From positions 1 through 64,000 of the IMG/VR virus record IMGVR_UViG_3300008111_000002: a stretch of DNA of 64,000 nt, one strand, 5' to 3'. Shown here piece by piece: positions 11,855-63,119 of this stretch; position 1 is the first letter of the stretch, and the number at the start of each line of letters is the position of its first letter. The notes under the pieces are model-generated. The model was not told where the DNA came from, searched no databases, and saw only the letters and a program-made list of their open reading frames with translations. Made by a program: the position numbers and the translations under genes.

Positions 11855-11855
11855 A

Positions 11856-12083: not shown

Positions 12084-12084
12084 T

Positions 12085-12879: not shown

Positions 12880-12885
12880 AAACAC

Positions 12886-15948: not shown

Positions 15949-16018
15949 AGGATAGCCTCCTATTTTATGCGTTAGGCACGGACCTTTCAACCGTTGTGTC
16001 CGTGTCCGAACACATTTG

Positions 16019-33308: not shown

Positions 33309-35975
33309 TTGAGTTACGTTGACGCATTCTACGACCGCGATAATGATATTATCAACGTTGTTGAACGTGACGATAAGGGTAATCGTCACTATAAAGAACA
33401 TCCCGCAAAACATATTTTCTATTATCAAGACGCTCGTGGAAAATATAAATCAATTTACGGCGAACCTCTAACCAGAGTTAATTGCCGCAACATTAAAGAC
33501 TTACATAAAGAATTAAAAATATACGGTAGTAAAAAACTGTATGAATCGGATATTAATCCAATATTTAGATGTCTTGAAGAAAATTATCTTAATGTAGATT
33601 CTCCAAAACTTAATGTTTGTTTCTTTGACATTGAAGTAGACTTTGACCCAGAACGTGGTTATGCTGCGCCAGATGACGCATTTATGCCAATTACTGCAAT
33701 CACACTACATCTACAATGGTTAGATAGTCTTATTACTCTAGCTATTCCCCCCAAAAGTATTTCAATGGTGCAGGCTAAAGAAAGTGTTAAGGACTTTCCT
33801 AATACGTTTTTGTTTGACAATGAAGCTGATCTTTTAGATACATTTTTAAATCTCATAGACGATGCTGATGTTTTAAGTGGATGGAATAGTGAAGGGTTTG
33901 ATATTCCATATACCGTTAATCGTGTTACTAAAGTATTGAGTAAAGATGACACAAGACGCTTTTGTCTGTGGAATCAATATCCTAAAAAACGAGAATATGA
34001 AAAGTTTGGTAAGACCGCAGTAACTTACGACTTTTATGGACGGGTACACCTTGACAGTCTTGAATTATATCGCAAGTACACATACGAAGAACGACATACG
34101 TATAGACTAGATGCCATTGCTGAGACAGAAATTGACGAGCGTAAGACTGTATACGAAGGCACATTAGATCAATTATACAACGAAGACTTTCGCAAGTTTG
34201 TTGAATATAATAGACAAGATACTGCACTATTAGATAAACTCGATAAAAAATTAAAATTTCTTGATCTTGCAAATAAAATTGCACATGAAAATACTGTTTT
34301 GTTACAAACAACTATGGGTGCCGTAGCTGTTACAGAGCAGGCTATTATTAACGAAGCACATCGCAGAGGCATGCAGGTTCCTAATCGCATTAGACGTGAA
34401 CCAGGTAGTGATCCTGCGGCAGGTGCATATGTTGCTTATCCTAAGAAAGGTATTCATGAGTGGATTGGTTCTCTTGATATTAACAGTCTTTATCCTAGTG
34501 CTATTCGCGCCTTAAACATGGGACCAGAAACCATTGTTGGACAATTACGTCCAGATGGTACTAAAGCATACATAGATGCAGAGATGGACAAGGGCAAATC
34601 CTTTGCCAGTGCATGGGAAGGTATATTTGGTTCATTGGAGTATACTGCTGTAATGAATCAAGAAGTTGGTCGTGAAATAACTATTGATTGGGCCAACGGA
34701 AGTAGTGATGCATTAAGTGCAGCACAAATTTACGAATTGATCTTTAACAGTCATCAACCGTGGGTGATATCAGCTAACGGCACTATTTTTAGTTATGAAC
34801 ACGAAGGTATTATACCAGGACTACTTGCACGTTGGTATAAAGAACGTAAAGAAATGCAGGCAAAATTAAAAGAATGTATACAGGCGGGAAATAAAATTGA
34901 AGAAGAATATTGGGATAAACGTCAACTGGTTAAGAAAATTAACCTTAATAGCTTATATGGTGCTATTCTTAATCCTGGTTGTAGGTTTTTTGATCCTCGT
35001 ATCGGCCAATCCACAACTCTTACTGGACGGCAAATTGCCAAGCACATGGCTAGTAAGGTAAATGAAATAGTCACCGGCGAATACAATCACGTAGGTAAAG
35101 CAATTATCTATGGCGATACTGACTCGTGTTATTTTTCAGCATACAATACTTTGAAAAAAGAAATAGAAAAAGGTGCTATACCGTGGACTAAAGAAACTGT
35201 AGTACAGCTTTATGATCAAATTGGTGATGAAGTTAACGATACGTTTATTAAATTTATGCAAGATGCTTTTCATTGCCCAAAAACTAGAGGTGATGTAATT
35301 AAAGCAGGCAGAGAAATTGTTGCCAGTAAAGGATTGTTCATTACCAAAAAACGCTATGCCGTATTATATTATGACAAAGAAGGCAAACGTTCAGACATAA
35401 ATGGTAAGCCGGGTAAAATCAAAGCCATGGGATTGGATCTTAAACGTTCGGACACTCCTGTAGTAATCCAAGACTTTTTAACAGAAGTGTTAACTAAAGT
35501 TCTTAATGGTATTCCTAAAGAAGAAATTCTAGAATATATTACATCGTTTAGAACTGAATTTAAAACTAGACCCGGATGGGAGAAAGGATCACCAAAACGT
35601 GCAAACAACATTACAGAATATGCCAATAAAGAGAAGAAGCTTGGCAAGGCAAATCTTCCTGGTCATGTTAGAGCAAGCCTTAATTGGAACACGCTCAAAA
35701 GAATGTTCGACGACAAATACTCAATGAACATTGTAGACGGGTCTAAAGTCATTGTGTGTAAAGTCAAAGACAATCCCATGGGATATACATCAGTAGCATA
35801 TCCTGTAGATGAACTTAGACTTCCTCAATGGTTTAAAGACTTACCTTTCAACGATGCTGAAATGGAAAATTCAGTTATCGACGAAAAATTAGAAAACCTT
35901 ATTGGTGTTTTGGAATGGGACATCAGTTCAACAAGGTCGGATAATACATTCAACAAATTGTTTGATTTTGAATGA
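33309..35975 (+). CDS. polB: Family B DNA polymerase (T4 gp43-like)
   Basis: Exo I FFDIEV, Exo II GWNSEGFD, Exo III YNRQD, region II SLDINSLYPS, KKINLNSLYG, YGDTDS, KKRYA. TTG start; C-terminal NKLFDFE resembles a clamp-binding tail. Confidence 0.97.
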   Translation: MSYVDAFYDRDNDIINVVERDDKGNRHYKEHPAKHIFYYQDARGKYKSIYGEPLTRVNCRNIKDLHKELKIYGSKKLYESDINPIFRCLEENYLNVDSPKLNVCFFDIEVDFDPERGYAAPDDAFMPITAITLHLQWLDSLITLAIPPKSISMVQAKESVKDFPNTFLFDNEADLLDTFLNLIDDADVLSGWNSEGFDIPYTVNRVTKVLSKDDTRRFCLWNQYPKKREYEKFGKTAVTYDFYGRVHLDSLELYRKYTYEERHTYRLDAIAETEIDERKTVYEGTLDQLYNEDFRKFVEYNRQDTALLDKLDKKLKFLDLANKIAHENTVLLQTTMGAVAVTEQAIINEAHRRGMQVPNRIRREPGSDPAAGAYVAYPKKGIHEWIGSLDINSLYPSAIRALNMGPETIVGQLRPDGTKAYIDAEMDKGKSFASAWEGIFGSLEYTAVMNQEVGREITIDWANGSSDALSAAQIYELIFNSHQPWVISANGTIFSYEHEGIIPGLLARWYKERKEMQAKLKECIQAGNKIEEEYWDKRQLVKKINLNSLYGAILNPGCRFFDPRIGQSTTLTGRQIAKHMASKVNEIVTGEYNHVGKAIIYGDTDSCYFSAYNTLKKEIEKGAIPWTKETVVQLYDQIGDEVNDTFIKFMQDAFHCPKTRGDVIKAGREIVASKGLFITKKRYAVLYYDKEGKRSDINGKPGKIKAMGLDLKRSDTPVVIQDFLTEVLTKVLNGIPKEEILEYITSFRTEFKTRPGWEKGSPKRANNITEYANKEKKLGKANLPGHVRASLNWNTLKRMFDDKYSMNIVDGSKVIVCKVKDNPMGYTSVAYPVDELRLPQWFKDLPFNDAEMENSVIDEKLENLIGVLEWDISSTRSDNTFNKLFDFE

Positions 35976-37146: not shown

Positions 37147-37369
37147 TGCTGATCACAAAGTATCCTATTATTATGAAAATGATACAGGAAGAATTATTGG
37201 ACAGGTTTATAATCTGGCCCATACTAACATCTACGGAGCAAAAGTAGTCAGCGAATTTAACGAAGAAAAATATTTAGGCCAGTATATTAACGAAACATTT
37301 GCTAAACAGGCTATAGAATATTTCTGGAATTTACAAGAGAGAACACTAACACATGAAACAACCAGTTGA
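37130..37369 (+). CDS. Hypothetical protein
   Basis: Overlaps both neighbours. Confidence 0.55.
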   Translation: MKNWRDADHKVSYYYENDTGRIIGQVYNLAHTNIYGAKVVSEFNEEKYLGQYINETFAKQAIEYFWNLQERTLTHETTS

Positions 37370-39017
37370 TTTAACCCCATTACAAAAAGACTATGCAGTA
37401 TATTTGCCTGCCATTAGTTCTTTTTACTCTACATATATAGATAAGCAAAGAAAAGAAGAATTTGTTTCTAAAGAACGTATTCCTGTAGGATTTGATCGCG
37501 GTATTGAAGGCATGAACTTTCTAAATCCCGAACAAGGTTATTTTTATTACAAGTACGGTCTGTATTCAGCAGGTCATGCACAATTAGACATTGAAAAGAG
37601 TCTAAATCAAGAACTAATGATACAACAAAGAGATCGTAGCAAAACTATGATTTTAGGAGATTCGGGCGGTTATCAGATTGGTAAAGGCGTTATTAAATTT
37701 GACTGGTCAGATTTTGAAGGTGAAAAAGCCAACAAAGTTCGTGAAAAAATCCTAACTTGGTTAGACGTTACTGCTGATTGGGCCATGATGTTAGACGTTC
37801 CGACCTGGGCCTGTGATCACATTCATCAACCCAAAACTGGTCTTAAAGATTTTCAAGACTGCCTTGATAAAACACGTTTTAACAACGAATATTTTATTAA
37901 AAAACGTCTTGGTGTTAAAGACGGCGGAACAAAATTATTAAACGTTTTACAAGGTTCAAACTGGGAAAACGCAGAAGCGTGGTACCAGGGTGTAAAAGAG
38001 TTTTCCGATACTAGCAAATACGGAGACAAAGCAGCAGAAGGATGGGCTATGGGCGGTGCCAATATGTGCAAGATGCCCGTAACTCTTAAACGTCTTATTA
38101 CCATGAAGTTTGACGGTATGTTAGAAGGCAAAGATTGGATGCACTTCTTAGGTACTGCTCAATTAGATTGGAGTTGTTATCTTACCTCTATTCAAAGGCA
38201 AATTAGAAAACATGTTAACGAAAACTTTACCATTTCTTTTGACTGCGCATCACCCTTCATTGCAACAGCGCACGGACTTGTCTATACCAATGCCCAACAC
38301 ACTCCCAAGCGATGGTCGGTCATTATGGACAAAGCGCCAGATACCAAGACTCTTTCAGAATCCAATTTCCCGTTCCCGTTTGAGTCAGAAGTTGGACGAC
38401 GTCTAACAATGGGAGATATTTGTTATTATGATTCAGGTGTACTTAAATCTGAAGATGAATTAGGCTTAGATCCAAAAACTGGAAAACCTATAACATTAGA
38501 TACTACAAATCCAAATCACTATCATATAGTTCCTAACCGCCTAAATAAGCTTGGAAAAATTCCAAGAAAAACTAGTTGGGATTCATTTGCGTATGCTCTT
38601 ATGATGAGTCACAATGTGTATTGTCATATTGCCGCTGTTCAACGTGCAAATCAATTAATGGATATTGAATTATACAATAAACCAAGAATGCCTTGGAGAA
38701 CTTATAAAGCTAAAATGAAAGACAATGATTTTAGCGATGAGATTAGCGATTGGGTTCCAAGAAACATTCTGTATTTTGACAGTTTTGTTGAAGAGCTTTT
38801 TGCCTGCAAAGATAAGGATACAGCATTTGAAATGATTGAGACTGCTACTACTCTAGGTTTCTTAAACGGTGTAGAAGGTGCTCGACTACGTGGCGGAGTA
38901 ACTAGTATTGCTGATAATTTATTTTATGAAGAAGGCGAAGAAAATAAATCTGCTTATCAAGATGAACGAAACGATGGAGAATTAGATAAGCTTGAATCTT
39001 TATTTAGAGAGGACTAA
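37353..39017 (+). CDS. dpdA: TGT-fold transglycosylase, DpdA-like (7-deazaguanine insertion into DNA)
   Basis: Ordered TGT motifs: GDSGGYQ, MMLDVP, NVLQG, GWAMGG, HFLG, SFDCASP (catalytic Asp), SHNV. No CxCxxC zinc triad. Clustered with folE and queE. Confidence 0.8.
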   Translation: MKQPVDLTPLQKDYAVYLPAISSFYSTYIDKQRKEEFVSKERIPVGFDRGIEGMNFLNPEQGYFYYKYGLYSAGHAQLDIEKSLNQELMIQQRDRSKTMILGDSGGYQIGKGVIKFDWSDFEGEKANKVREKILTWLDVTADWAMMLDVPTWACDHIHQPKTGLKDFQDCLDKTRFNNEYFIKKRLGVKDGGTKLLNVLQGSNWENAEAWYQGVKEFSDTSKYGDKAAEGWAMGGANMCKMPVTLKRLITMKFDGMLEGKDWMHFLGTAQLDWSCYLTSIQRQIRKHVNENFTISFDCASPFIATAHGLVYTNAQHTPKRWSVIMDKAPDTKTLSESNFPFPFESEVGRRLTMGDICYYDSGVLKSEDELGLDPKTGKPITLDTTNPNHYHIVPNRLNKLGKIPRKTSWDSFAYALMMSHNVYCHIAAVQRANQLMDIELYNKPRMPWRTYKAKMKDNDFSDEISDWVPRNILYFDSFVEELFACKDKDTAFEMIETATTLGFLNGVEGARLRGGVTSIADNLFYEEGEENKSAYQDERNDGELDKLESLFRED

Positions 39018-39826: not shown

Positions 39827-40323
39827 TGGCAAACTGGAAAGTATCTCCTTATTATAAAAAATCTTGTGAAGAACACGAACAGTATTTTAAAGACGGTCAG
39901 ATAATTGTTCGCAAAACTGGATTTAGGGGTGCCAGTTTTTTTGTTGAAACTAACGATGACAACCCTCCAGAATTTGAATTTGATTTTGTTCCTGGCGGCG
40001 ATGGCCGCAAAGACAGTATCGATATGTATAACTGCGTAGGTAACAATATTGAAAATGTTGAATTAGATTCAATGTGGGACGGCTGCTGGGAAGATATTGA
40101 TTTTCCCGAGGACTTTGATGAAGATGAAAAAGAACGTCTAATGGAACAGATTGATGAAGAAGGTATCTACGAAGTTCTTGAAGGTAATGAAGGCTGGAGT
40201 CAAAACGAGTGCCAAGCATGGATTTGGGGACCAATCTTGATTGAGGATGAAAATGGCAATCAAGTTCGTATCATTGCAGCAGACGAAAATGGTAATGTTG
40301 TAGATTTTAAGGAAGAAGAATGA
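39826..40323 (+). CDS. Very acidic hypothetical protein
   Basis: Asp/Glu-rich 165-aa ORF. Confidence 0.65.
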   Translation: MANWKVSPYYKKSCEEHEQYFKDGQIIVRKTGFRGASFFVETNDDNPPEFEFDFVPGGDGRKDSIDMYNCVGNNIENVELDSMWDGCWEDIDFPEDFDEDEKERLMEQIDEEGIYEVLEGNEGWSQNECQAWIWGPILIEDENGNQVRIIAADENGNVVDFKEEE

Positions 40324-40853
40324 AACGTGATTACAACTCAGGTGTTGCAGACAGCATCACGTTCTTCACAGGCGTAGAAATTGAACGTACTCCTGCGTAT
40401 GGAATGAAGACTCTATTTGTAGTTAGTGTCCACGATCCATATATTATTATGGAACTTGCTCGCAATAATAATTGCAAACACATTTACTTTGGTGCTAATC
40501 AAAGTTTTAAAACTAAAGGCGTTAATGATGCAGAAACATGGCGCCCTTGGGAAGATATGATCTATGTCTGTCTAGATGCAGAAGATGGTTTTTGGTGTAC
40601 ACTAGACTTTGATGTATCCGAAACTGAAGGTCTTTTGGAGAGTGGACTTACAGAAAAACGTAGATTTATTCCGCAGATTAGTGTAAAATTACCTTATATT
40701 AATCAACTAGGCTATAATGCTACGTTAAAGATTGATGATAAAGATTTTAGTGCAACCAATCCTGGGGTATGGTGCCATAACCTACAGGACCTTCTGAGAA
40801 GAGATCGCTTTACAGATTGGGACCAATATGGCAAGGATGAGATACTCAAATAA
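40320..40853 (+). CDS. Uncharacterised protein in the deazaguanine locus
   Basis: FTGVEIERTPAYGMKTLFV, HIYFGANQSF, NPGVWCH; alpha/beta pattern; function not recognised. Confidence 0.6.
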   Translation: MKRDYNSGVADSITFFTGVEIERTPAYGMKTLFVVSVHDPYIIMELARNNNCKHIYFGANQSFKTKGVNDAETWRPWEDMIYVCLDAEDGFWCTLDFDVSETEGLLESGLTEKRRFIPQISVKLPYINQLGYNATLKIDDKDFSATNPGVWCHNLQDLLRRDRFTDWDQYGKDEILK

Positions 40854-41206: not shown

Positions 41207-41412
41207 ACATTAAAGAATTTACAGTTAAACAAAGTACAGGATTTGCACTTAAAGTCAAGAGTTGGAAATGTCTTAGTCCAGCAGATCTAAATAGCATTGA
41301 GTTTATTAACGAGTCCTATAACGATGATGGCGAAATAACTCATTTATCTACATACAATTTTTTCATGACTGATGATGAAATTAAAACTTTGTGCGAAGGA
41401 ATGCTTAAGTGA
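41203..41412 (+). CDS. Hypothetical protein
   Basis: ATGA/GTGA overlaps with neighbours. Confidence 0.55.
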   Translation: MNIKEFTVKQSTGFALKVKSWKCLSPADLNSIEFINESYNDDGEITHLSTYNFFMTDDEIKTLCEGMLK

Positions 41413-41804
41413 TTGTTAAACAAGACATTAGACCTAACAAAATGATTTGGGTGACTTTCCGTAAGGAAGGTATTCATAAATATCCTGCGGCTCTTACAGA
41501 TCCCAATCTAGCTACAGGAGATGAATATGACGTATCGTTTTTGGGTCACCCTCATCGCCACATCTTTCATTTCAGGGTGTGGATCAATGTGCTCCATAAT
41601 GACAGGGACATCGAGTTCATCCAATTCAAACGATGGCTCGAGTCGTTGTATAATGGTCAAGGTGCCGTTCTAAGCCTTGACTATAAAAGTTGTGAAATGA
41701 TGTCAGATGATTTACATGACATTATCAGCAAGAAGTATCCAGGCCGCGAGGTTTGGATTGAGGTCTCCGAGGATGGAGAAAATGGTTCATTCATCAAATA
41801 CTAA
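41409..41804 (+). CDS. QueD-like T-fold protein, DpdL type (putative 7-carboxy-7-deazaguanine decarboxylase)
   Basis: GIH...FLGHPHRHIFHF (LxxxHRHxF), RDIEF, SCEMM, VSEDGENG. Size and motifs fit the T-fold QueD paralogs found in deazaguanine-modifying phages. Confidence 0.7.
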   Translation: MIVKQDIRPNKMIWVTFRKEGIHKYPAALTDPNLATGDEYDVSFLGHPHRHIFHFRVWINVLHNDRDIEFIQFKRWLESLYNGQGAVLSLDYKSCEMMSDDLHDIISKKYPGREVWIEVSEDGENGSFIKY

Positions 41805-41819
41805 CTAAAGGAAATACCG

Positions 41820-42050
41820 ATGAAAACTGAAGTTGAGAAGATTTTTAATGATCTCGACGCCCTGTTGGACTTCTGCAGATTTGAACTTCTGCCGTACAAT
41901 CCAGCAGATTTGTATAATCGCCAAAGTAAAGTTTGGCAAGCTTACGAGGCATCTAAACGCCCTCGTCGACATTTCGATCGCAATGATCGCAATGGAGATC
42001 GAAAGGAGTGGAAGCCACGAGGCACTCAAAATTATCGGTCTAGACACTGA
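41820..42050 (+). CDS. Hypothetical protein with Arg-rich tail
   Basis: AAGGA RBS; TGATG coupling to the glycosyltransferase gene. Confidence 0.55.
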   Translation: MKTEVEKIFNDLDALLDFCRFELLPYNPADLYNRQSKVWQAYEASKRPRRHFDRNDRNGDRKEWKPRGTQNYRSRH

Positions 42051-43144
42051 TGACAATATTCCTAGTTGATTTAGAAGCAGTCGAAACTAGGTACACAGGC
42101 GAGTGGAAAAAACACTTGCCTGTGTTGCTACGAAAGGCAGGACACAATGTCAACATTATATCAGGTCCTACGGACATTCCTAGTGCTACCACTCCTGGAG
42201 CATTTCTCAACTTTGGCGGCACTAATATATATAAAGCTAGTCAAGTGGAGCAGATGGGCCGTTTATTTTGTAGCGGATCCGTTCATCCCGGCGACCACTT
42301 TATTTTTACTGATGCTTGGCATCCAGGCATCATAAACTTAAAATACATGAGCGAGTTACTGAGTATTCCAGTGACTACACACGGCTTATGGCATGCTGGT
42401 AGTTATGATCCCCAAGACTTTTTAGGGCGATTAGTTGGTAACAAACCTTGGGTTAGAAATGCTGAGAAGAGTTTCTATCACGCATTTGACCACAACTATT
42501 TTGCCACAGAGTTTCATGTACATCTGTTTATGAAACAATTACTTAATGACGGATACACTAGTGAAAATCCGTGGTGGAAACAAGACTGGGACGAACGCTA
42601 CGACAGTGGCAAAATTGTTCGTTCAGGTTGGCCAATGGAGTATATGGAAGATACTTTGAGTATGTATAAAGGTATGGAAAAGAAAGATGTTATTCTTTTT
42701 CCGCACAGATTGGCTCCAGAAAAACAATTAGATATCTTTTTAGACTTAAAAGATCAATTACCTCAGTATGAATTTATTGTTTGTCAAGAAAGACAACTGA
42801 CAAAAAACGAATATCATAATTTGTTAGGAGAAAGTAAATTAGTATTCTCAGCTAATTTACAAGAAACTTTAGGTATCAGTTGGTACGAGGGTGCTGTTGT
42901 TAATTCTATTCCAATGGTGCCCGGACGTCTAAGTTACAAAGAAATGGCACTAGAAGAGTTTACATATCCTTCAGAGTGGACAGAATCTTTTGAAAAATAT
43001 AAAATGCACAGAAAAGAAGTTGTAGATAGGATTGTTTACTACATGGAAAATTATCAATCTTTTCTACCACGCCTAAATAAACAGGTAGATTACTTAACTA
43101 AAAATTATTTTAGTTGTAATAAACTATTGGAGATGTTAAAATAA
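42050..43144 (+). CDS. GT-B (GT4-like) glycosyltransferase
   Basis: ILFPHRLAPEKQ and QETLGISWYEGA (Ex7E donor-binding motif); 364 aa, two-domain. Confidence 0.8.
   Translation: MTIFLVDLEAVETRYTGEWKKHLPVLLRKAGHNVNIISGPTDIPSATTPGAFLNFGGTNIYKASQVEQMGRLFCSGSVHPGDHFIFTDAWHPGIINLKYMSELLSIPVTTHGLWHAGSYDPQDFLGRLVGNKPWVRNAEKSFYHAFDHNYFATEFHVHLFMKQLLNDGYTSENPWWKQDWDERYDSGKIVRSGWPMEYMEDTLSMYKGMEKKDVILFPHRLAPEKQLDIFLDLKDQLPQYEFIVCQERQLTKNEYHNLLGESKLVFSANLQETLGISWYEGAVVNSIPMVPGRLSYKEMALEEFTYPSEWTESFEKYKMHRKEVVDRIVYYMENYQSFLPRLNKQVDYLTKNYFSCNKLLEMLK
43114..43142 (+). promoter_or_regulatory. Sigma70-type promoter TTGTAA-N17-(TGT)TAAAAT upstream of folE
   Basis: 17-nt spacer and an extended -10 TG. Confidence 0.5.
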
Positions 43145-43180
43145 TAATGTCATCCACGACTATAACTCGGAGAATAAAAA

Positions 43181-43921
43181 ATGGTTTATGAAAATATGTA
43201 CAAAAGCAATGATGAAGATTTAGATATCATTGTCCCAAGAGAAAAAAATATCAGCGAAGTAATTCGTTCACGAATTAAAGCAGCAAATGCTCGTTTCCAT
43301 GCAAATGATAATATTGCGGACTTTATTGAAAATGAAGATGAAGTAGATCAATTAGTTGACGAAGTAGCAGGTCAATTTCAAGGCGTTTTAAATTCATTAA
43401 TTATAGATACAGAAAATGATCATAATACTCAAGACACAGCTAGACGAGTGGCAAAGATGTTCGTCAGAGAAACTTTTGGAGGACGTTACAAAAATGTTCC
43501 AAAGGTTACGGCTTTCCCTAACATGGGCTATAAGAGTCTTTACACTACTGGTCCTATTAGTATCCGTTCAACTTGCGCTCACCACTTCCAAAATATCGTC
43601 GGTAGATGTTGGGTTGGCATCATACCTGAGGGGGAAGTTATCGGACTCAGTAAGTTCAACAGATTGGTACATCACATTTGCGAACGACCCCAGATTCAAG
43701 AAGAAATGACTACGCAAATTGCAGACGCACTAAAAAAATATGCCAAGACTGAAAATATTGCAGTAGTAGTTAAAGCAGAACATCATTGTATGACTATGCG
43801 AGGTGTTCGTGAGCATGAAAGCGATATGACTACTGCAATTATGTTAGGTGCATTTGGAACTGATCCGGCACTTAAACAAGAGTTTTATGATATCTGCCTA
43901 AGCATGAAAGGACATTCATGA
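43181..43921 (+). CDS. folE: GTP cyclohydrolase I
   Basis: DTARRVAKM, STCAHH, IGLSKFNR, QIQEEMT, AEHHCMTMRG. Confidence 0.95.
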   Translation: MVYENMYKSNDEDLDIIVPREKNISEVIRSRIKAANARFHANDNIADFIENEDEVDQLVDEVAGQFQGVLNSLIIDTENDHNTQDTARRVAKMFVRETFGGRYKNVPKVTAFPNMGYKSLYTTGPISIRSTCAHHFQNIVGRCWVGIIPEGEVIGLSKFNRLVHHICERPQIQEEMTTQIADALKKYAKTENIAVVVKAEHHCMTMRGVREHESDMTTAIMLGAFGTDPALKQEFYDICLSMKGHS

Positions 43922-44139
43922 ATTCCGTTGAAGTAGCAAATAACTTAATTAATCGTGTAAAAAATTTACAAACGTTTGAAGTTAAGCGTATGTTAGACGG
44001 TCCCATAGAATTTAGAGGTGGCCGCATTCCATTTGATATTAAAGCAAATCAGGAATGTGCATGGTTTAAAGTTGTAGCGTTATCTCAACAAGAAGCAGAA
44101 CAAATGGTTGACCGCTGGTTACAAGGAGAGGATGATTGA
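43918..44139 (+). CDS. Hypothetical protein
   Basis: ATGA overlaps with neighbours. Confidence 0.55.
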   Translation: MNSVEVANNLINRVKNLQTFEVKRMLDGPIEFRGGRIPFDIKANQECAWFKVVALSQQEAEQMVDRWLQGEDD

Positions 44140-44579
44140 TAGTTCTCAAACTTTTGGAAAAATTAGGCCGTAAAAGAATTATTATGGATCGTATGAGTAA
44201 CGAACCGTATTTAGAAAGATACTATCTTTTTCTTAAAGAAAGAAATAAATTTCCTTTTAATATTTTTTTACATAAATTTTTAAAAGGTGATCCGGATGAT
44301 CTTCACGATCATCCTTGGCCATATGCTACATTAATTCTTAAAGGCGGCTACTGGGAAACTACTCCAAGGGGAAAATTTTGGAGAGGAGCCGGCCATTTTA
44401 GAACTTGTAGTGCAGAAAGTTACCATCGAATTGAATTGGAACCGGGTGTAGATTGCTGGACACTGTTTATGCCAGGACCCCATAAAAGAGAATGGGGGTT
44501 TGATGTTAACGGTAGGTGGATACAACATGAACAATATTTAAAAGAACGTTATGAACAAGCTCATACTAGATCAATATAA
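44136..44579 (+). CDS. Cupin-fold protein
   Basis: DLHDHPW...ILKGGYWE...YHRIEL cupin metal motifs. Confidence 0.75.
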   Translation: MIVLKLLEKLGRKRIIMDRMSNEPYLERYYLFLKERNKFPFNIFLHKFLKGDPDDLHDHPWPYATLILKGGYWETTPRGKFWRGAGHFRTCSAESYHRIELEPGVDCWTLFMPGPHKREWGFDVNGRWIQHEQYLKERYEQAHTRSI

Positions 44580-45048
44580 AATGTCTAATCTAGTTTCTAA
44601 AATTGCTAGAGATATTACTGTTAGCGATTGGAAACCAGATTATGTTGTAGGTTTAACTAGAGGCGGACTAATTCCTGCTGTAATGTTAAGTCACTATTTT
44701 TCAATACCCATGCATACCCTGGGTGTAAGCCTAAGAGATCAGTTAGGCGGAGAAAGTAATCTATGGATGGCTGAAGATGCACTAGATTATAAAAATATTT
44801 TAGTTGTTGACGATATTAACGATACAGGAGCAACATTTAACTGGATCGTTAATGATTGGAAATCTAGTTGTTTTCCTGACAATCCTAATTGGAATAATGT
44901 ATGGAATCAAAATGTTAAATTTGCAGTATTAGTTGATAATCTATCTAGTGATTTTCAATATAGAATGGATTATGTAGGAATGGAAATTAATAAAGCAGAA
45001 AACAATGTTTGGGTTGATTTTCCGTGGGAGGAATGGTGGGCAAAATGA
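44551..45048 (+). CDS. Type I phosphoribosyltransferase (Gpt/Hpt-like)
   Basis: VVGLTRGGLIPA, PRPP-binding loop ILVVDDINDTGAT, WVDFPWE. Confidence 0.88.
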   Translation: MNKLILDQYKMSNLVSKIARDITVSDWKPDYVVGLTRGGLIPAVMLSHYFSIPMHTLGVSLRDQLGGESNLWMAEDALDYKNILVVDDINDTGATFNWIVNDWKSSCFPDNPNWNNVWNQNVKFAVLVDNLSSDFQYRMDYVGMEINKAENNVWVDFPWEEWWAK

Positions 45049-45431
45049 AACAATCTATAATGGAGGATCAACCTCCTTTTATTGAAGATAGTAAGGCACC
45101 ATGGGATAACTTACTAGAAGAAGACTTTCATGTAAAAGTTTTCTACGACAAGTATCCTGTTACAGAAGGGCATCTTTTATTTGTGCCTAAATATAATACT
45201 GTCGCAGTCTTAATGGATGCATTTGAAAGTGCTGTTCGTGATGGTATGCGTATGGTAGACGAAGGTACATGTGACGGGTTTAACGTTGGTTTTAATTACG
45301 GCAATGCAGCTGGGCAAACAGTAGGTTGGCCACACGTTCATTTAATTCCAAGACGCAAGGGCGATATGGAAGACCCAACAGGCGGAGTTCGTCACGTTAT
45401 ACCAGAGAAAGGAAATTATAAAAAATGGTAA
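45045..45431 (+). CDS. HIT-family nucleotide hydrolase
   Basis: PVTEGHLLFVPK, GFNVGFNYGNAAGQTVGWPHVHLIPR. Confidence 0.9.
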   Translation: MKQSIMEDQPPFIEDSKAPWDNLLEEDFHVKVFYDKYPVTEGHLLFVPKYNTVAVLMDAFESAVRDGMRMVDEGTCDGFNVGFNYGNAAGQTVGWPHVHLIPRRKGDMEDPTGGVRHVIPEKGNYKKW

Positions 45432-46488: not shown

Positions 46489-47349
46489 ATGAGTAAAATT
46501 AAAATTGCAGAGCTGTTTTACAGCATACAAGGTGAAGGACGCTATATGGGTGTGCCTTCTGTTTTCTTACGTACATTTGGATGCAACTTTAAATGTGCAG
46601 GCTTTGGTATGCCACACGGTAAGATTAGCATTGAAGCAGATGACATTGCATACACTCATGCAAATATTGAATCGTTTCAAAAATACGAAGAACTTCCTCT
46701 AGTGTCTACAGGATGTGATAGTTATGCTAGCTGGCATCCTGCTTTTAAAGATCTTAGTCCAATGCTTACTAGTGAAGCTATTGTAGATCGCATTATGGAA
46801 ATTATTCCGTTTAATGAATGGCGTGATGAGCATCTAGTCATTACAGGCGGTGAGCCGTTACTAGGGTGGCAACGTGCTTATCCTGAGTTGCTAGAACATC
46901 CTAAAATGAAATCTTTGAAAGAAATTACTTTTGAAACAAATGGTACTCAAAAACTTGATCCTAAATTTAAAGATTATTTGATTAAATGGGGTTTAAAAGA
47001 AAGAGGATACAATAAACTTACGTTTTCAGTTAGTGCCAAACTAAGTTGTTCTGGGGAGGAACGGCATGAAGCAATTCGTCCAGATGTTATACGCGAATAT
47101 GAGGAGGTAGGCTACACATATCTTAAATTTGTAGTAGCGACAGAAGAAGATGCAGAAGAAGCAATTGAAACAATCGACATTTACAGAGCCGAAGGGTTTG
47201 CGGGACCCGTATATCTTATGCCAGTTGGCGGGGTGGAGTCTGTTTATAGTCTTAATAATCGTAGGGTCGCTGAATTAGCAATGAAGAACGGATTACGTTA
47301 TTCAGATCGTTTACAGGTACCATTATTTAAAAATGAGTGGGGAACTTAA
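46489..47349 (+). CDS. queE: 7-carboxy-7-deazaguanine synthase (radical SAM)
   Basis: ELFYSIQGEG, FLRTFGCNFKC...GCDS, VITGGEP, FETNG, SAK, LKFVV, YLMP, RLQV. Confidence 0.9.
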   Translation: MSKIKIAELFYSIQGEGRYMGVPSVFLRTFGCNFKCAGFGMPHGKISIEADDIAYTHANIESFQKYEELPLVSTGCDSYASWHPAFKDLSPMLTSEAIVDRIMEIIPFNEWRDEHLVITGGEPLLGWQRAYPELLEHPKMKSLKEITFETNGTQKLDPKFKDYLIKWGLKERGYNKLTFSVSAKLSCSGEERHEAIRPDVIREYEEVGYTYLKFVVATEEDAEEAIETIDIYRAEGFAGPVYLMPVGGVESVYSLNNRRVAELAMKNGLRYSDRLQVPLFKNEWGT

Positions 47350-51438: not shown

Positions 51439-51736
51439 AAAATTTTTTCGACCGCCAGAAAAAGTTGTTAATGAATGGCCGGAAATTTTTGAGGACATGT
51501 ATATGAGCACCATGCCTCTCTATTATACAAAATCTATGCAGATTAAATTTGATAATGGGAGGATATGGCAGCTCAATATACAAGAGTTAGTAGTTGAACA
51601 TGGTAGTGATGAATTATCTACTAAACTATTAGAAACATTTAAAGAATATCAACAAGACATCACCGGTGTAGATTTTGAAATTGATATCGATAAATTAAAA
51701 AAAGATATTAAAAAATCAATTAAGAAAATTCTTTAA
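51431..51736 (+). CDS. Hypothetical protein
   Basis: Last plus-strand gene; convergent overlap with the island gene. Confidence 0.6.
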   Translation: MPKKFFRPPEKVVNEWPEIFEDMYMSTMPLYYTKSMQIKFDNGRIWQLNIQELVVEHGSDELSTKLLETFKEYQQDITGVDFEIDIDKLKKDIKKSIKKIL

Positions 51737-52925
51737 AATACTTTTTAGTACTAGATACAATTTCATCAAGGTATTGTTTTCTAAAGTCTAATTGTTTATA
51801 AATGTATAAATTATGTTCAACGATTGACAACCATTTGTTATAATATTTTTCTTTATCATCATTTATCCAAGATAAAAAAGATTCGTGAAATTTAGCGAAT
51901 CTTTTTTTATGATCCGCAATATCGTCATAACTTGTATCTATGAAATCAGTTCTAAATCCATAATTTTGTAATTTTTTTAATATTCCAACTTGTCCAAGTA
52001 TAATAAATGGATGTCCCATAGCAATTGGGCGAAATGTTTTTTCTGTTATAAACATTCCCGGATCCTCAAAAAAAGTTTCTGTTGAAACGGTTAAGAATGT
52101 ATTTTCAAAAATACATAAATTACTTTTTCCAGCAAGATGTGCTGTTCTTAATTCTTCTGTCGAAACATCAGCTTCTATTGGATATTGTGTTTTTAAAGTT
52201 TTACTATAAGTTTCCGATGATTCATCTAAAAATGTAGGATTTAATGATTCTAAATTAGTATCAAAAAAAGATCCACCAGAAACGATTCCTCGAGATAGTA
52301 AATTATTTTTTGCTAAAAAATATAAATGATCTGTTCTATGACTTCTGTGCGCCCTGTTTAAGCTATTAAAAAGTTTAGCACGATTCTTTATTGATTTATA
52401 AAAAATAGGATCATATTGTTTTTTCCAAGCCTCTCCAACCCATTCTATACCTTCAATAAATTCTAAAGTTGGTTTTAGATTATTTTGCCGACACCACTTA
52501 TTGTATTGTTCTTTTGCTTTTAAATTTCCAGATACGATTAGTACACTCTTAGAAGGTAATTCTAATTTATCAAAAGATTCTGTCAGGTATCTATAACAAT
52601 CATATTTTGATGTAAAACTATCTCCTTCAACTACAGAAATTATTACGATTCTTAATTTTTTTTGTTTTGTAGCCTCTATCACATGAATCGGAATATTATC
52701 TAAAATTTTAAAACTATCTTGATGTTCGTCTGTACACCAATCATAAGAATGTCTACTAACTTCAATAAAATATATTCCGGGATAATCATAATTTTTACTA
52801 CAAACAAATTCTAATTCAGGATGTGTATTTCTTTTAACAAAATATTCATAAGGTCTGACATTTTTTACCTGATCTATATGAGAAAGATTTATTTCATTCT
52901 GATTATCAAAATAACACTGTATCAT
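51720..52925 (-). CDS. GT10/fucosyltransferase-like GT-B protein, paralog 1
   Basis: FNSLNRAHRSHR, TETFF..FITEKTFRPIAMGHPFIILG, GFRTDFIDTSYD. Confidence 0.55.
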   Translation of the reverse strand: MIQCYFDNQNEINLSHIDQVKNVRPYEYFVKRNTHPELEFVCSKNYDYPGIYFIEVSRHSYDWCTDEHQDSFKILDNIPIHVIEATKQKKLRIVIISVVEGDSFTSKYDCYRYLTESFDKLELPSKSVLIVSGNLKAKEQYNKWCRQNNLKPTLEFIEGIEWVGEAWKKQYDPIFYKSIKNRAKLFNSLNRAHRSHRTDHLYFLAKNNLLSRGIVSGGSFFDTNLESLNPTFLDESSETYSKTLKTQYPIEADVSTEELRTAHLAGKSNLCIFENTFLTVSTETFFEDPGMFITEKTFRPIAMGHPFIILGQVGILKKLQNYGFRTDFIDTSYDDIADHKKRFAKFHESFLSWINDDKEKYYNKWLSIVEHNLYIYKQLDFRKQYLDEIVSSTKKYFKEFS

Positions 52926-53514
52926 ATCCCCTCGCTAGTATCACACCATTATTTTGAGAATAAACAATTCTGTAATTACGACTGACCAGGAACGGCACAA
53001 CAGCAGAGCATTTTCCTATATAAATTCCGCTATGTTCTTGCAACGGTGTATCATCGCAAATAATAATAGACTTATCAGACATATAAGGATAACAATTTAT
53101 CATTTGATTTAAATGTTCTGCTACACAATTAAGATTAGTCCATTCTAAATTAAATTTTTCTCGATATAAATTTTTTAATCCAGTTTCATCTGGTTTCATT
53201 GGACGATGATTCCAATCATAATTATCTAGATATAAAATTTTTATTTTTTTGTTAAGAGTTGGTAAAACTTCCTTGGTCCATTTTGATCCGTCGCTGACCA
53301 CAAAGGTAGTATTTGTTAAATGAGATAAATTATTTCTAGCAGATTCTGATATATCAACACTATAAAAAGGAACGTTAAATTTCTTCGAATGCAAATTAAA
53401 AAATTCAGTAGAACCTTCTCCCCTCTCGCTACCGATTTCTAATATAATGTCTTTATGCTGATCGTATTCAGCATATAGAATGAAGGGAATCGAGTTTTTA
53501 TGAAAGTTTGCCAT
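52906..53514 (-). CDS. Class I SAM-dependent methyltransferase
   Basis: ILEIGSERGEGST, YSVD, ILYLDN, IICDDT. Confidence 0.7.
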   Translation of the reverse strand: MANFHKNSIPFILYAEYDQHKDIILEIGSERGEGSTEFFNLHSKKFNVPFYSVDISESARNNLSHLTNTTFVVSDGSKWTKEVLPTLNKKIKILYLDNYDWNHRPMKPDETGLKNLYREKFNLEWTNLNCVAEHLNQMINCYPYMSDKSIIICDDTPLQEHSGIYIGKCSAVVPFLVSRNYRIVYSQNNGVILARGYDTVLF

Positions 53515-54600
53515 TTAGTAAATCCTTGCTGGGGTCCATTTCATATCTTTTAAAAAAAAGAAAAAATAATCGTCGGTCATTCCGTATAATTTAAAAGGTC
53601 TATCTTCTAACATAAATTTTAATGCCTCTGGAACTATTCTTTGTTTATCATACATAATTTCTATAATTTTAGATTTATTATGAATCAATTTAGGAAGAAG
53701 TTTAAAATACAAATTCTGTAATTCTGGCTCTGATAAATTTATAATCGATCTAATATTTTCAATGATTCCGGAAATTCTATCTTCTAATAAATCGCAATCG
53801 TCAAAACTATAATCAAATATTTCATCATATAATTTCAAATTAAATTTTTTACAAAAATAATCTTTATAAAAATGTTTGCAGCTAAGAACTAAAAAAGGTT
53901 TAAACCAAGCAATACTTCTTAATGTCTTTTCAGTTAAATGAAATCTACCTTCTTCAAACCAAGTTTCGTTAATAATATCAACAAAACAGTTTTCTATACT
54001 TTTGGGTTTTCTAAAATGTTCTGTAGAATCTTTTGAATATAGATCTTCATCCATTCGTATTCTACCATCATAATATCTCCATCTACAATGATGATCTCTT
54101 AATACTTCGTTCGCTCTGGTAAAAGTTACCATACCCTTGTCAATCCATCCCTCTTTAGCTAATGCATCAACCATTTTAATTCTATGTTCTGCAACACGCA
54201 CATTATAACAACTATAATAATATCTAAAATTTCTAGGACCTCGCATATAAGGAACAATCGCTACTCCCTGATCGTATTTTTCAGGAAAAGACATGTTGTT
54301 AATAAATGATGGAAATGCAGTAATAATATTACCATAAGATGTTTCACATTTTACATGAGGGTGCAACCATTTATCTAAATGTGGTGTTACAACATTTATA
54401 ATTTTATTATTTTTGATACACCAATCTTTCAAATGTATAAAAGCATTTCCATATAATTCCTCTATCGCCACTTCTGTTACGCTATGAACAATAATTTTAT
54501 CGGGGTTTATTTCTTCAATTGATTTAGATAAAAATAACCATTCGTCATCTGTACTAGGAAATAATGAATGACAATTTTGAATAATATATGCTTTTATCAT
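53515..54600 (-). CDS. GT10-like GT-B protein, paralog 2
   Basis: YSCYNVRVAEHR, INETWF..HLTEKTLRSIAWFKPFLVL, FDYSFD. Confidence 0.55.
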   Translation of the reverse strand: MIKAYIIQNCHSLFPSTDDEWLFLSKSIEEINPDKIIVHSVTEVAIEELYGNAFIHLKDWCIKNNKIINVVTPHLDKWLHPHVKCETSYGNIITAFPSFINNMSFPEKYDQGVAIVPYMRGPRNFRYYYSCYNVRVAEHRIKMVDALAKEGWIDKGMVTFTRANEVLRDHHCRWRYYDGRIRMDEDLYSKDSTEHFRKPKSIENCFVDIINETWFEEGRFHLTEKTLRSIAWFKPFLVLSCKHFYKDYFCKKFNLKLYDEIFDYSFDDCDLLEDRISGIIENIRSIINLSEPELQNLYFKLLPKLIHNKSKIIEIMYDKQRIVPEALKFMLEDRPFKLYGMTDDYFFFFLKDMKWTPARIY

Positions 54601-55727: not shown

Positions 55728-55734
55728 AAAAGTT

Positions 55735-56436
55735 TTAATAAAATACTGATTTGTGGGGAGACTCTAAAGGTGTTGAATTGCTCAGATAATAGATCGACAT
55801 TAAATTTTGTCTTTCGATATCCTCGGGGCAAAGTATCGGCTCTGTAAAACCATGAAAAAACTCTTGCTCATATTCCCAAAAAATTAATCTATTGGGTGTT
55901 GGCTCAACTGTTAATAATTTTTCAGTTTTAGAACGATTCCAAAATTCTAACTGTCCGTTCCATTCAGATTTCCATTCTGGATTTGAATAAATTATTAAAT
56001 TGAACGCTCGATTTAATTTTAATGAATTATTCCAATTAAAATCAATATGCAACCCCAATTGAGAATTGCGAGGAGTTGATGTTATGCCTGCTCCTAAATA
56101 ATGAGGATCGGGTATTATTCCTTCAACTCCTGTAATTTTTGTCATCCATGAAATAAAATTATGTCCTGTTAAATTTAACATTATATTCTGCAATATATCT
56201 GAACCGGTAAAATCTCGAGTTTCTTTTCTCGGACCGGAAGTATTGCCAAGATTCTTATGAATCCATTTATCAGCAGGATAGTTTCTTATATCATTACATA
56301 GATTTTTGTATATTTCTTCGGGAAAAAAATTATCAACAATTATATGTTTGATAGGTGAGGACACCTTATACTGATTTGATAAAGATTCAGTAGCATAATA
56401 TTTTTCTAAATTGTTAAAAAAACTGTTAATTTCCAT
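55735..56436 (-). CDS. 2OG-Fe(II) oxygenase
   Basis: IIVDNF, LHIDFN (HxD), GQLEFW, FFHGF, RQNL. Confidence 0.85.
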   Translation of the reverse strand: MEINSFFNNLEKYYATESLSNQYKVSSPIKHIIVDNFFPEEIYKNLCNDIRNYPADKWIHKNLGNTSGPRKETRDFTGSDILQNIMLNLTGHNFISWMTKITGVEGIIPDPHYLGAGITSTPRNSQLGLHIDFNWNNSLKLNRAFNLIIYSNPEWKSEWNGQLEFWNRSKTEKLLTVEPTPNRLIFWEYEQEFFHGFTEPILCPEDIERQNLMSIYYLSNSTPLESPHKSVFY

Positions 56437-58530: not shown

Positions 58531-58540
58531 TTTAAGTCCT

Positions 58541-63103: not shown

Positions 63104-63119
63104 TTTACCCCAATCTTAA

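Follow-up and report, generated by a model that had tools for sequence, protein, structure and literature searches.

The replacement of guanine in DNA by 7-deazaguanines is a well-studied anti-restriction strategy of phages, and the closest described relatives of the locus examined here are the systems that include DpdL, a QueD paralog and the proposed decarboxylase of 7-carboxy-7-deazaguanine (CDG). In the type represented by Cellulophaga phage phiST, FolE, QueD, QueE and DpdL are found without QueC, and the transglycosylase is DpdA3, accompanied by a kinase-like protein and MazG but by no glycosyltransferase (GT); the DNA of phiST contains 2'-deoxy-7-deazaguanosine (dDG; PMC10516641). Glycosylation of nucleic acid bases is known from other settings. 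The T4 alpha- and beta-glucosyltransferases are GT-B enzymes that act on hydroxymethylcytosine in DNA, and the tRNA-queuosine mannosyltransferases (the QTMAN/GTDC1 family) are GT4-type GT-B enzymes that act on a 7-deazaguanine derivative in a nucleic acid. HuiG, from the huimycin cluster of Kutzneria albida, transfers GlcNAc from UDP-GlcNAc to the 2-amino group of a free 7-deazaguanine derivative and is encoded with FolE, QueD, QueE and QueC homologs; like the dapiramicin GTs, it offers a chemical precedent, from a secondary-metabolite pathway that also has a methyltransferase and no DNA-insertion enzyme (PMC7439116). Among small-molecule enzymes, the GT4 members BshA and MshA transfer from UDP-GlcNAc to small polar acceptors.

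The DNA considered here is a 64,000-nucleotide stretch of a large phage genome (the window; positions 1 to 64,000 of IMG/VR record IMGVR_UViG_3300008111_000002), and in it a predicted GT-B glycosyltransferase is encoded between dpdL and folE. The original prediction described the order dpdL, a small Arg-rich ORF, a GT4-like GT and folE as tightly coupled, and placed it 8.5 kb from and opposite to a separate sugar island. That observation is correct. All four ORFs are present on the + strand (Table 1), and their coupling is tight: a GTGA start/stop overlap lies at 41409, a 15-nt gap with a GGAA ribosome-binding site precedes the small ORF, a TGATG stop/start overlap joins the small ORF to the GT, and a 36-nt gap with a GGAG site precedes folE. 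The sugar island is likewise real, lying 8.6 kb downstream at about 28% GC. A DpdA/TGT-like transglycosylase located 3 kb upstream was missed by the original prediction, and QueE, a purine phosphoribosyltransferase (PRTase), a HIT protein and a cupin are also part of the block. A megablast search of the region against phage genomes found no match.

Table 1. Features of the predicted deazaguanine module and the separate sugar island within the window
Position	Strand	Length (aa)	Assignment
37353-39017	+	554	DpdA-like DNA guanine transglycosylase (TGT superfamily)
40320-40853	+	177	Protein of unknown function, recurrent neighbour of the module
41409-41804	+	131	DpdL (QueD paralog, proposed CDG decarboxylase)
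41820-42050	+	76	Small basic protein (pI 9.7), function unknown
42050-43144	+	364	GT-B (GT4-like) glycosyltransferase, predicted
43181-43921	+		FolE, GTP cyclohydrolase I (first step to 7-deazaguanines)
44136-44579	+		Cupin-fold protein, role unknown
44551-45048	+		Purine phosphoribosyltransferase
45024-45431	+		HIT-family nucleotide hydrolase/transferase (Hint/Fhit-like)
46489-47349	+		QueE-like radical SAM 7-carboxy-7-deazaguanine synthase
51720-63638	-		Sugar island: UDP-glucose dehydrogenase, NAD epimerase, 2OG oxygenase, radical SAM protein

The DpdL assignment is supported by the sequence LGHPHRHIF at residues 45-53, which corresponds to the LxxxHRHxF signature that replaces the CxxxHGH of QueD (PMC10516641), as well as by homology to phiST CGPG_00067 (34% identity, tblastn E 4e-12), ACP17 DpdL (55% identity, E 1.5e-39) and PHROG 17812 (E 9e-33); its true start may be the ATG at residue 12, where homology begins. 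FolE is identified by Pfam PF01227 (E 5e-47) and PHROG 2197 (E 2.5e-53), and QueE by its match to the QueE of PAC2, ACP17, phiST and Phosso, a weak Pfam Radical_SAM hit and a local QueE HMM (E 9e-89). No QueC or QueD was detected in the 64-kb window, which does not cover the rest of the genome. The PRTase matches Pfam Pribosyltran (E 2e-12), with purine, xanthine-guanine and hypoxanthine-guanine PRTases as the closest PDB entries (1vdm, E 9e-12), and it also belongs to the module in PA5oct-like phages and in BUCT-ZZ01, where it is annotated XGPRT. The HIT protein (Pfam HIT, E 1e-8; PDB HIT proteins, E 3e-8) is conserved after the PRTase in many loci, while the cupin-fold protein (PHROG 4786, E 5e-39; only weak cupin matches in the PDB) is conserved in the close lineage. 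Homologs of the small basic ORF occur in 89 related loci between DpdL and the GT, with a conserved N-terminal core (IF-DL---LD-CR-eL...NPADLY) and a variable Arg/Lys-rich tail, so that it is a real gene; it is absent in Phosso, ACP17, PA5oct and L086 (L-numbers denote individual related loci). Homologs of the 177-aa protein lie directly beside the GT in L099 and L109, near it in L126, and directly upstream of DpdA in ACP17, although Pfam, PHROG and Atlas searches gave it no assignment.

The transglycosylase is a more divergent case, and its membership of the DpdA/TGT superfamily rests on motifs, a chain of homology and genomic context. It carries DSGGYQ (103-108), LQG (199), GG (234), HFLG (264) and FDC (296), thereby providing the catalytic and substrate motifs DSGGxQ, QG, GG, xLxG and FD(C), which are invariant across 7 divergent relatives. 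It gave no Pfam hit at E 0.001 and no PHROG hit, and a PDB profile search built only from its close relatives found nothing. A broader family profile, however, hit TGT in 44 of 45 PDB matches at E-values of only 0.02-0.7, with DSGGxQ aligned on the DSGGYQ of TGT and the motifs aligned onto Z. mobilis TGT. The AlphaFold2 model (pLDDT 71) is an alpha/beta barrel and returned only generic TIM-barrel matches, whereas neighbours in the Atlas carry TGT and DpdA Pfam domains. The homology chain runs from the window protein to a 540-aa protein of PAC2 (43% identity), a 402-aa protein of L086, a 424-aa protein of ACP17 and a BUDD protein annotated as queuine tRNA-ribosyltransferase. The ACP17 protein matches, at E about 1e-38, the homologous protein of Vibrio phages nt-1, VH7D and KVP40, which is annotated queuine tRNA-ribosyltransferase in some of these records, and the homolog of Vibrio phage 2.275.O sits beside QueF, a queuosine-biosynthesis protein and FolE. 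The finding of this protein excludes an earlier reading in which the module had no DpdA and the GT replaced it.

The GT itself has no Pfam, PHROG or NCBIfam hit and no match in a PDB sequence search; its Pfam Glycos_transf_1 score is 11.9 bits (E 0.16) against a cut-off of 26.4, and 42 of 59 family members hit this model weakly (best E 1.3e-8), as befits a divergent family of its own. Its AlphaFold2 model (pLDDT 94.8, pTM 0.92) is nonetheless a two-Rossmann-domain GT-B fold with an inter-domain cleft. Foldseek against the PDB gives a probability of 1.00 and TM scores of 0.6-0.65 to GT4/GT5 structures, the best being glycogen synthase, BshA, MshA, PglA and WaaG (E down to 8e-11), although identity to BshA and MshA is only 9-13% and their pathway context is unrelated; against BFVD, the ACP17 homolog scores TM 0.87. 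The motifs that define retaining GT4 enzymes and bind the nucleotide-sugar are present as FPHR220-x4-K225 and E272-x7-E280, along with H115-A-G117. Across 59 divergent relatives E280 is invariant and R220, K225 and E272 are at least 90% conserved, and a profile alignment to PDB 8xsg, a GT, covers both motifs. The possibility that the protein is a misread DpdA3 is ruled out by its GT-B fold, which is not a TIM barrel, and neither it nor anything else in the window resembles phiST DpdA3. The comparison with the T4 glucosyltransferases drawn in the original prediction holds at the level of the fold only: none of the 50 listed PDB matches is described as a T4 DNA glucosyltransferase, a cyanophage protein named "DNA alpha-GT" is only rank 34 in BFVD, and the acceptor here would be a purine analogue without a hydroxymethyl group. 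A bacterial QTMAN-like cluster is among the structural neighbours (TM about 0.73-0.76), but similarity is no better than to generic GT4 enzymes, these phages make no queuosine, and at most one of the 59 members can match the N-terminal QTMAN_N domain (PF12038).

This GT family is very large, with 1072 clusters at 50% identity and more than 8000 at 90%, and the refuting condition set in the original prediction, that GT homologs are not linked to dpd genes, is clearly not fulfilled. In 127 of 130 informative loci a DpdL gene lies within 5.4 kb of the GT, and DpdA is usually adjacent or within a few kb; several other contigs were too short to be informative, and scans with the proteins P0142 and P0147 found nothing. 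The loci include PA5oct-like phages, Phosso, ACP17, BUDD/X1, BCSR5, cyanophage BUCT-ZZ01, and chromosomal cassettes in Magnetospirillum and Methylobacterium. Gene order is shuffled between lineages while proximity is kept: DpdL-small ORF-GT in the window, DpdA-GT-DpdL in PA5oct and ACP17, GT-DpdA-DpdL in BUDD, DpdL-GT-DpdA in L110 and L126, and GT-DpdL-DpdA-QueD in Magnetospirillum. Many of the linked loci belong to related jumbo-phage lineages, so part of the linkage is shared ancestry, and three family members are not dpd-linked, namely L088, L140 and PhiXhv-12, the last lying next to GlmS and an LmbE-type deacetylase. No GT-DpdA or GT-DpdL fusion was found among 390 proteins, which contained only one PRTase-GT chimera (P0229).

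A similar association is seen among phage records. DpdL was found by tblastn in 28 phage records, including phiST and ACP17; all 17 records with a match covering at least 80% of the GT carry DpdL, and BUCT-ZZ01 adds one more by HMM. Of the 28, the 18 records that combine DpdL with the GT comprise 17 with a DpdA2-like enzyme and BCSR5 with a divergent 446-aa candidate, while the remaining 10 have a DpdA3-type enzyme, usually next to a kinase, and no GT. About 67 records with a DpdA2-like enzyme but no DpdL have no GT. The GT therefore follows DpdL, as expected for a step downstream of it, and is a component of a DpdL/DpdA module. Whereas phiST uses DpdA3, the 554-aa transglycosylase of the window is DpdA2-like, and a GT4-like enzyme is an obligate companion. 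Sugar-nucleotide genes join the cassette in other lineages: L096 has a full NAD epimerase/dehydratase between DpdL and the GT, plus a GT2, PA5oct-like phages have a short NAD-epimerase-like protein, and BUCT-ZZ01 has a second GT.

The block is best explained as one 7-deazaguanine DNA-modification module. In this view FolE and QueE, with a QueD encoded outside the window, would convert GTP to CDG, DpdL would convert CDG to 7-deazaguanine, and the DpdA-like transglycosylase would exchange guanine in DNA for the deaza base, with the PRTase probably recycling the released guanine, a step that is likewise inferred. The GT, predicted to be an active, retaining-type enzyme that uses a nucleotide sugar, would most likely, because it travels with DpdL and the DpdA2-like enzyme as a cassette, transfer a sugar onto the deazapurine made by DpdL, either as the free base before insertion or as the base already in DNA, and in either case the phage DNA would carry a glycosylated 7-deazaguanine. 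Whereas the gene identities, the fold, the conservation of motifs and the genomic linkage are established by the analysis, the acceptor, the sugar, the order of steps, the final product and transfer to a base in duplex DNA are inferred in the absence of chemical evidence of any kind, and this explanation is held with only moderate confidence. The original interpretation, that the GT decorates the deaza base or its precursor as a new DNA hypermodification, is accordingly supported in part: the enzyme class and the linkage to dpdL and dpdA in many independent lineages bear it out, and searches of the accessible literature for a glycosylated 7-deazaguanine in DNA, or for this GT, found no description. 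It is also in keeping with the resistance of PA5oct DNA, whose modification is unidentified, at several G-containing restriction sites (PMC12191111). Against it, 7-deazaguanine has no obvious O-nucleophile, such that the sugar would have to go on N2, on O6 or on an electron-rich ring carbon, or DpdL would have to make something other than plain 7-deazaguanine. The GT family is acidic (median pI 5.7), which gives no sign of DNA binding, but DpdA is equally acidic and the property does not discriminate.

The main rival, considered unlikely but not negligible, is that the GT is a pathway or insertion helper, perhaps forming a transient glycosyl intermediate or activating the base so that the product of DpdL becomes usable by the DpdA2-like enzyme, or working with that enzyme, with plain dDG as the final base as in phiST. 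The exact complementarity of the GT and DpdA3 among the DpdL-positive phages, which the original prediction did not consider, also fits this reading, as do the adjacency of the GT and DpdA genes, with overlapping or abutting stop and start codons, in PA5oct, ACP17, BUDD and BCSR5, and the failure of ACP17 DpdL plus DpdA without the GT to give dDG in E. coli (PMC10516641). However, no transglycosylase is known to need a glycosyltransferase, DpdA2-type enzymes work alone in other phages, and the extra sugar-nucleotide genes and second GTs of some cassettes suggest a stable glycan product rather than a transient one. The same adjacency to DpdA, together with the sub-threshold Pfam score, could point to a non-catalytic, structural or DNA-handling subunit of DpdA, but the conservation of the R-x4-K and E-x7-E motifs and the HAG loop at 90-100% across the family argues for retained catalysis, and this is the least likely of the alternatives.

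It is also unlikely that the GT acts on an unrelated acceptor, such as another modified DNA base, a phage or host protein, or a host glycan or lipid, and lies near the dpd genes only because early and nucleotide-metabolism genes cluster in these phages. The nearest solved structures do act on small molecules and glycans, the distant members in L088 and PhiXhv-12 have no dpd neighbours, and a dCMP deaminase lies nearby. Nevertheless, the linkage survives gene-order shuffling and holds on bacterial chromosomes, where there is no phage replication module, the GT is absent from related DpdA-bearing phages that lack DpdL, and no hydroxymethylase was seen among the ORFs of 21-51 kb that were scanned against Pfam. 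Less likely still is a pterin glycoside made by FolE, the PTPS-like DpdL and the GT as a small metabolite, as cyanobacterial and Chlorobium pteridine glycosyltransferases do downstream of FolE and PTPS. Those enzymes are grouped by CAZy with GT-1- and AviGT-4-like proteins and glycosylate tetrahydrobiopterin (PMC5683033). Pteridine glycosyltransferases are GT-B enzymes of about 350 aa. DpdL is itself a PTPS/QueD paralog for which the decarboxylase activity is only proposed, yet the cassette includes a DNA transglycosylase and QueE, which have no role in pterin glycosides, and phiST, with DpdL but no GT, has dDG in its DNA.

In the papers found here every sugar-bearing phage DNA base is a pyrimidine, and none is a purine or deazapurine. 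A conserved GT within a DpdL/DpdA cassette would thus either extend the known chemistry to a glycosylated deazapurine or represent a missing enzyme in the unproven DpdL route to dDG. Should the cassette make a sugar-bearing 7-deazaguanine in DNA, which is possible though somewhat less likely than not, it would be, as far as is known, the first glycosylated purine-type base found in natural DNA, although the literature searches addressed only deazaguanine. The family occurs in cultured phages (PA5oct, ACP17, Phosso, BUDD and BUCT-ZZ01), so that the prediction is open to direct test. It also bears on phage therapy, because the therapeutic phage PA5oct is targeted by nucleases that sense modified DNA. 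Beyond its abundance in environmental jumbo phages, the cassette lies on Magnetospirillum and Methylobacterium chromosomes, next to a CoiA-like nuclease in M. aberrantis, where it could be the modification half of a new restriction-modification-like system, and bacterial self-modification systems may be affected as well.

The region spanning 33-49 kb of the window is a + strand replication and nucleotide-metabolism block of a large phage. It holds, in order, a family B DNA polymerase, a sliding-clamp-like protein, a 554-aa protein, several small open reading frames (ORFs), the four genes considered here, and then a cupin, a phosphoribosyltransferase, a HIT protein, a dCMP deaminase, a QueE-like radical SAM enzyme and an RNase H/FEN nuclease. 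The polymerase and the gene order resemble those of the PA5oct-like Pseudomonas jumbo phages and Sinorhizobium phage Phosso, at about 50% polymerase identity. No phage genome in GenBank is close at the DNA level, although the exact proteins occur on a 186-kb metagenomic contig. Other cargo in the window includes a ClpB-like chaperone, PhoH, a truncated second UDP-glucose dehydrogenase-like ORF and a protein with ubiquitin-E1 FCCH-like domains (see table).

Coordinates of features in the window and in related loci (locus numbers denote individual loci compared with the window)
Location	Position	Strand	Feature
Window	71-4447		1458-aa protein with ubiquitin-E1 FCCH-like domains, next to tail-fibre-like genes
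Window	13122-13913		Truncated second UDP-glucose dehydrogenase-like ORF
Window	15208-15990	-	PhoH
Window	21412-23781		ClpB-like double AAA+ chaperone
Window	33309-35975	+	Family B DNA polymerase
Window	37353-39017	+	554-aa DpdA/TGT-like transglycosylase
Window	40320-40853	+	177-aa protein with no family assignment
Window	41409-41804	+	DpdL
Window	41820-42050	+	76-aa basic protein
Window	42050-43144	+	Predicted GT-B glycosyltransferase (GT)
Window	43181-43921	+	GTP cyclohydrolase I (FolE)
Window	44551-45431	+	Purine phosphoribosyltransferase and HIT protein
Window	51720-63638	-	Low-GC sugar island
L092 (phage BUDD)	6374-6868		Small PAPS-reductase-like (PP-loop) protein
L093 (phage BCSR5)	6152-6799		Small PAPS-reductase-like (PP-loop) protein
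L094 (Xanthomonas phage PhiXhv-12)	5669-8903		Distant GT homolog with GlmS and an LmbE-type deacetylase
L096 (metagenomic lineage)	3808-7100		GT2, DpdL, NAD-dependent epimerase/dehydratase, GT
L129 (Vibrio phage Bakedbeans)	9230-10381		gp176, 383 aa, with C-terminal DpdL
L132	5468-5929		Recurrent purine phosphoribosyltransferase
L147 (Magnetospirillum aberrantis SpK, contig of 424 kb)	8324-14053		GT-DpdL-DpdA-QueD cassette

The original prediction described a tightly coupled order of dpdL, a small Arg-rich ORF, a GT4-like glycosyltransferase and folE, lying apart from and opposite to a separate sugar island, and this observation holds. The first ORF is DpdL, as it carries LGHPHRHIF, the LxxxHRHxF signature that replaces the CxxxHGH of QueD (PMC10516641), and it matches the DpdL of phages phiST and ACP17. 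The 76-aa basic protein is conserved in 89 related loci and is therefore a real gene. The GT has no direct family hit, but with an alignment of 59 divergent relatives it is predicted to fold, at a pLDDT of 94.8, into a GT-B structure for which the best solved neighbours are the GT4/GT5 enzymes glycogen synthase, BshA, MshA, PglA and WaaG. The four genes, of which the last encodes GTP cyclohydrolase I, are joined by overlapping or near-abutting stop and start codons. The sugar island, 8.6 kb downstream, is also real. With a GC content of about 28%, against about 36% elsewhere, it encodes a UDP-glucose/GDP-mannose dehydrogenase, an NAD epimerase/dehydratase, a 2OG-Fe(II) oxygenase, a radical SAM protein and several unknowns, and could supply the donor sugar of the GT or serve an unrelated glycan.

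The GT family maintains the two hallmarks of retaining GT4 enzymes in its C-terminal domain, namely FPHR220-x4-K225 and E272-x7-E280. E280 is invariant, whereas R220, K225 and E272 are conserved in at least 90% of 59 sequences that are only 29-52% identical to the query. A family profile aligns these motifs onto the same motifs of a solved glycosyltransferase (PDB 8xsg). The N-terminal acceptor domain has its own conserved set, rich in aromatic and acidic residues, composed of Y15, W19, F52, D88, W90, Y99, H115, G117, D120, D123, W134 and E139. On this conservation alone, the protein is read as an active enzyme with a family-specific acceptor, the identity of which is not evident from the sequence.

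The original prediction overlooked a DpdA-like protein within the same block. The 554-aa protein is not recognized by Pfam or PHROGs, yet carries the TGT-superfamily motifs DSGGYQ, LQG, GG, HFLG and FDC, which are invariant across seven relatives down to 18% identity. A profile of those relatives retrieves tRNA-guanine transglycosylases as 44 of its 45 PDB matches with the motifs in register, although the E-values are only 0.02 and above. A chain of significant pairwise matches connects the window protein to a 540-aa protein of PAC2, a 402-aa protein of locus L086, a 424-aa protein of ACP17 and the BUDD protein annotated as queuine tRNA-ribosyltransferase. The ACP17 protein in turn matches, at an E-value of about 1e-38, the homologous protein of Vibrio phages nt-1, VH7D and KVP40, annotated as queuine tRNA-ribosyltransferase in some of these records. 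These phages carry DpdA2-type enzymes. The homolog of the window protein in Vibrio phage 2.275.O sits beside QueF, a queuosine-biosynthesis protein, a precursor transporter and FolE, and Atlas neighbours of the protein carry TGT and DpdA domains. Its AlphaFold2 model (pLDDT 71) is an alpha/beta barrel, but matches only generic TIM barrels. The protein is accordingly taken as a DpdA2-like DNA transglycosylase with good but not complete confidence. It belongs to a very large environmental family, of which 7982 clusters at 90% identity were scored in one search.

An absence of linkage between GT homologs and dpd genes had been named beforehand as grounds for rejecting the prediction, and such linkage was found. 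Among GenBank phages, all 17 records with a match covering at least 80% of the GT also have DpdL; these are Phosso, eleven PA5oct-like phages, ACP17 (two records), BUDD, X1 and BCSR5. A local HMM adds the cyanophage BUCT-ZZ01, in which the order is QueE-XGPRT-QueD-FolE-GT-like-DpdA-DpdL-GT. The GT abuts DpdA in PA5oct, ACP17, BUDD and BCSR5, and abuts DpdL in the window, Phosso, PA5oct, ACP17 and BUCT-ZZ01. Local HMMs for DpdL and DpdA were further used to score 80 close and 30 more divergent IMG/VR loci, 20 loci from GTDB genomes, 4 contigs from divergent representatives and 7 annotated phage loci. Of 130 informative loci, 127 have DpdL within 5.4 kb of the GT. The order of GT, DpdL and DpdA differs between lineages, which argues for selection on proximity and not just inheritance. 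The exceptions are long-branch members: L088, a polA phage with no dpd genes within 8 kb; L140; and PhiXhv-12, where the most distant GT homolog forms a trio with GlmS and an LmbE-type deacetylase, a BshA/BshB-like arrangement without dpd genes that points to UDP-GlcNAc chemistry in the wider family.

The 28 DpdL-positive records of cultured phages split in two. Eighteen have the GT, of which 17 have a DpdA2-like enzyme and BCSR5 has a divergent 446-aa candidate. The remaining 10 have a DpdA3-type enzyme and no GT, and comprise the five Cellulophaga records and MA9V-3, with the phiST type, and D479, Ahp1 (Ahp1_CNU-2021), Bakedbeans and RHph_I1_18, with a related type. About 67 further records carry the DpdA2-like enzyme with neither DpdL nor the GT, these being the Vibrio phages of the nt-1/KVP40 group, Stenotrophomonas phages, pf16 and 2.275.O; where the locus was examined or the record annotation shows it, they carry QueC or QueF routes. 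Thus, with the reservation that applies to BCSR5, the GT appears exactly when DpdL is combined with a DpdA2-like transglycosylase, and DpdL systems come in two exclusive forms. In phiST and D479, DpdA3 lies next to a kinase-like protein, and the kinase and MazG or phosphoesterase partners of DpdA3 raise the question of whether it works at the nucleotide level. In Bakedbeans, DpdL is itself part of a fusion, forming the C-terminal 120 residues of gp176 behind 260 unassigned N-terminal residues.

The cassette is not confined to phages. In the order GT-DpdL-DpdA-QueD it also lies on chromosomal-size contigs, up to 3.2 Mb, of several Magnetospirillum genomes, and it occurs as DpdA-DpdL-GT in Methylobacterium (loci L141-L152 and L154 across the two genera). 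In M. aberrantis the gene directly upstream encodes a protein with a CoiA-like nuclease domain, followed further upstream by a two-component histidine kinase and response regulator and then a HEPN protein (HEPN_LA2681). No phage structural genes were seen among the ten neighbouring proteins tested, and the locus may represent a bacterial modification-restriction island.

Signs of sugar chemistry are found elsewhere in the cassette. In L096 a full-length NAD-dependent epimerase/dehydratase lies between DpdL and the GT, with a GT2 just upstream, which suggests that a dedicated sugar-nucleotide supply and a second sugar belong to the module. PA5oct-like phages have a short NAD-epimerase-like protein two genes after DpdL, and BUCT-ZZ01 has a second GT-B protein in the cassette. 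BUDD and BCSR5 carry, along with DpdL and the GT, a small PAPS-reductase-like protein that might be a QueC-like amidating enzyme, and so their product may differ from that of the window lineage. A purine phosphoribosyltransferase, often followed by a HIT protein, recurs in the window lineage and PA5oct, and in BUCT-ZZ01 is annotated XGPRT. In the window it is of the purine (xanthine/guanine/hypoxanthine) type, while the HIT protein is Hint/Fhit-like and not GalT-like. By inference only, the phosphoribosyltransferase may salvage the guanine that DpdA releases, returning it to GTP. The 177-aa protein recurs directly beside the GT in loci L099 and L109, or beside DpdA in ACP17, and may be a further component of the module. 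In addition, one 291-aa protein (P0229) joins an N-terminal phosphoribosyltransferase fragment to the C-terminal half of the GT, and is either a real fusion or an assembly or gene-calling chimera.

In the most likely mechanism, FolE, QueD and QueE would make 7-carboxy-7-deazaguanine, which DpdL would convert, most likely to 7-deazaguanine as proposed for phiST. The DpdA2-like enzyme would exchange this base into DNA, and the GT would add a sugar from a nucleotide sugar to the deazapurine, either on the free base or in DNA. The analysis establishes the gene identities, the predicted fold, the motifs and the linkage, whereas glycosyl transfer itself, the acceptor atom, the sugar, the order of steps and the end product are inferred. 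The original proposal that the GT decorates the deaza base or its precursor is only partly supported. N2-glycosylation has a direct precedent in HuiG, which puts GlcNAc on the 2-amino group of a free 7-deazaguanine derivative in a cluster with FolE, QueD, QueE and QueC homologs (PMC7439116). C-glycosylation of the electron-rich pyrrole ring, or an unrecognized DpdL product with a nucleophilic side group, are the other chemical options. Two published observations fit a missing step: ACP17 DpdL plus DpdA gave no dDG in Escherichia coli (PMC10516641), and PA5oct DNA has an unidentified G modification (PMC12191111).

Among the alternatives, the exact complementarity with DpdA3 fits a helper role for the GT in which the final base is plain dDG, though this is considered unlikely. 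An unrelated acceptor is less likely still, as it is hard to square with the bacterial cassettes and with the absence of the GT from DpdA phages that lack DpdL. Pteridine glycosyltransferases acting after FolE and PTPS suggest a pterin glycoside (PMC5683033), but this doubtful reading does not explain the obligate DpdA and QueE. Least likely is a non-catalytic partner, against which the conserved catalytic motifs argue.

Searches of a library of papers found no description of this GT, of a GT in any dpd cluster, or of a glycosylated deazaguanine in DNA, and the key paper on DpdL (PMC10516641) does not contain the string "glycosyl". While 7-deazaguanine DNA-modification modules are already known, the one described here differs in its added, conserved glycosyltransferase, and if the favoured explanation is right its product would be a new DNA hypermodification.
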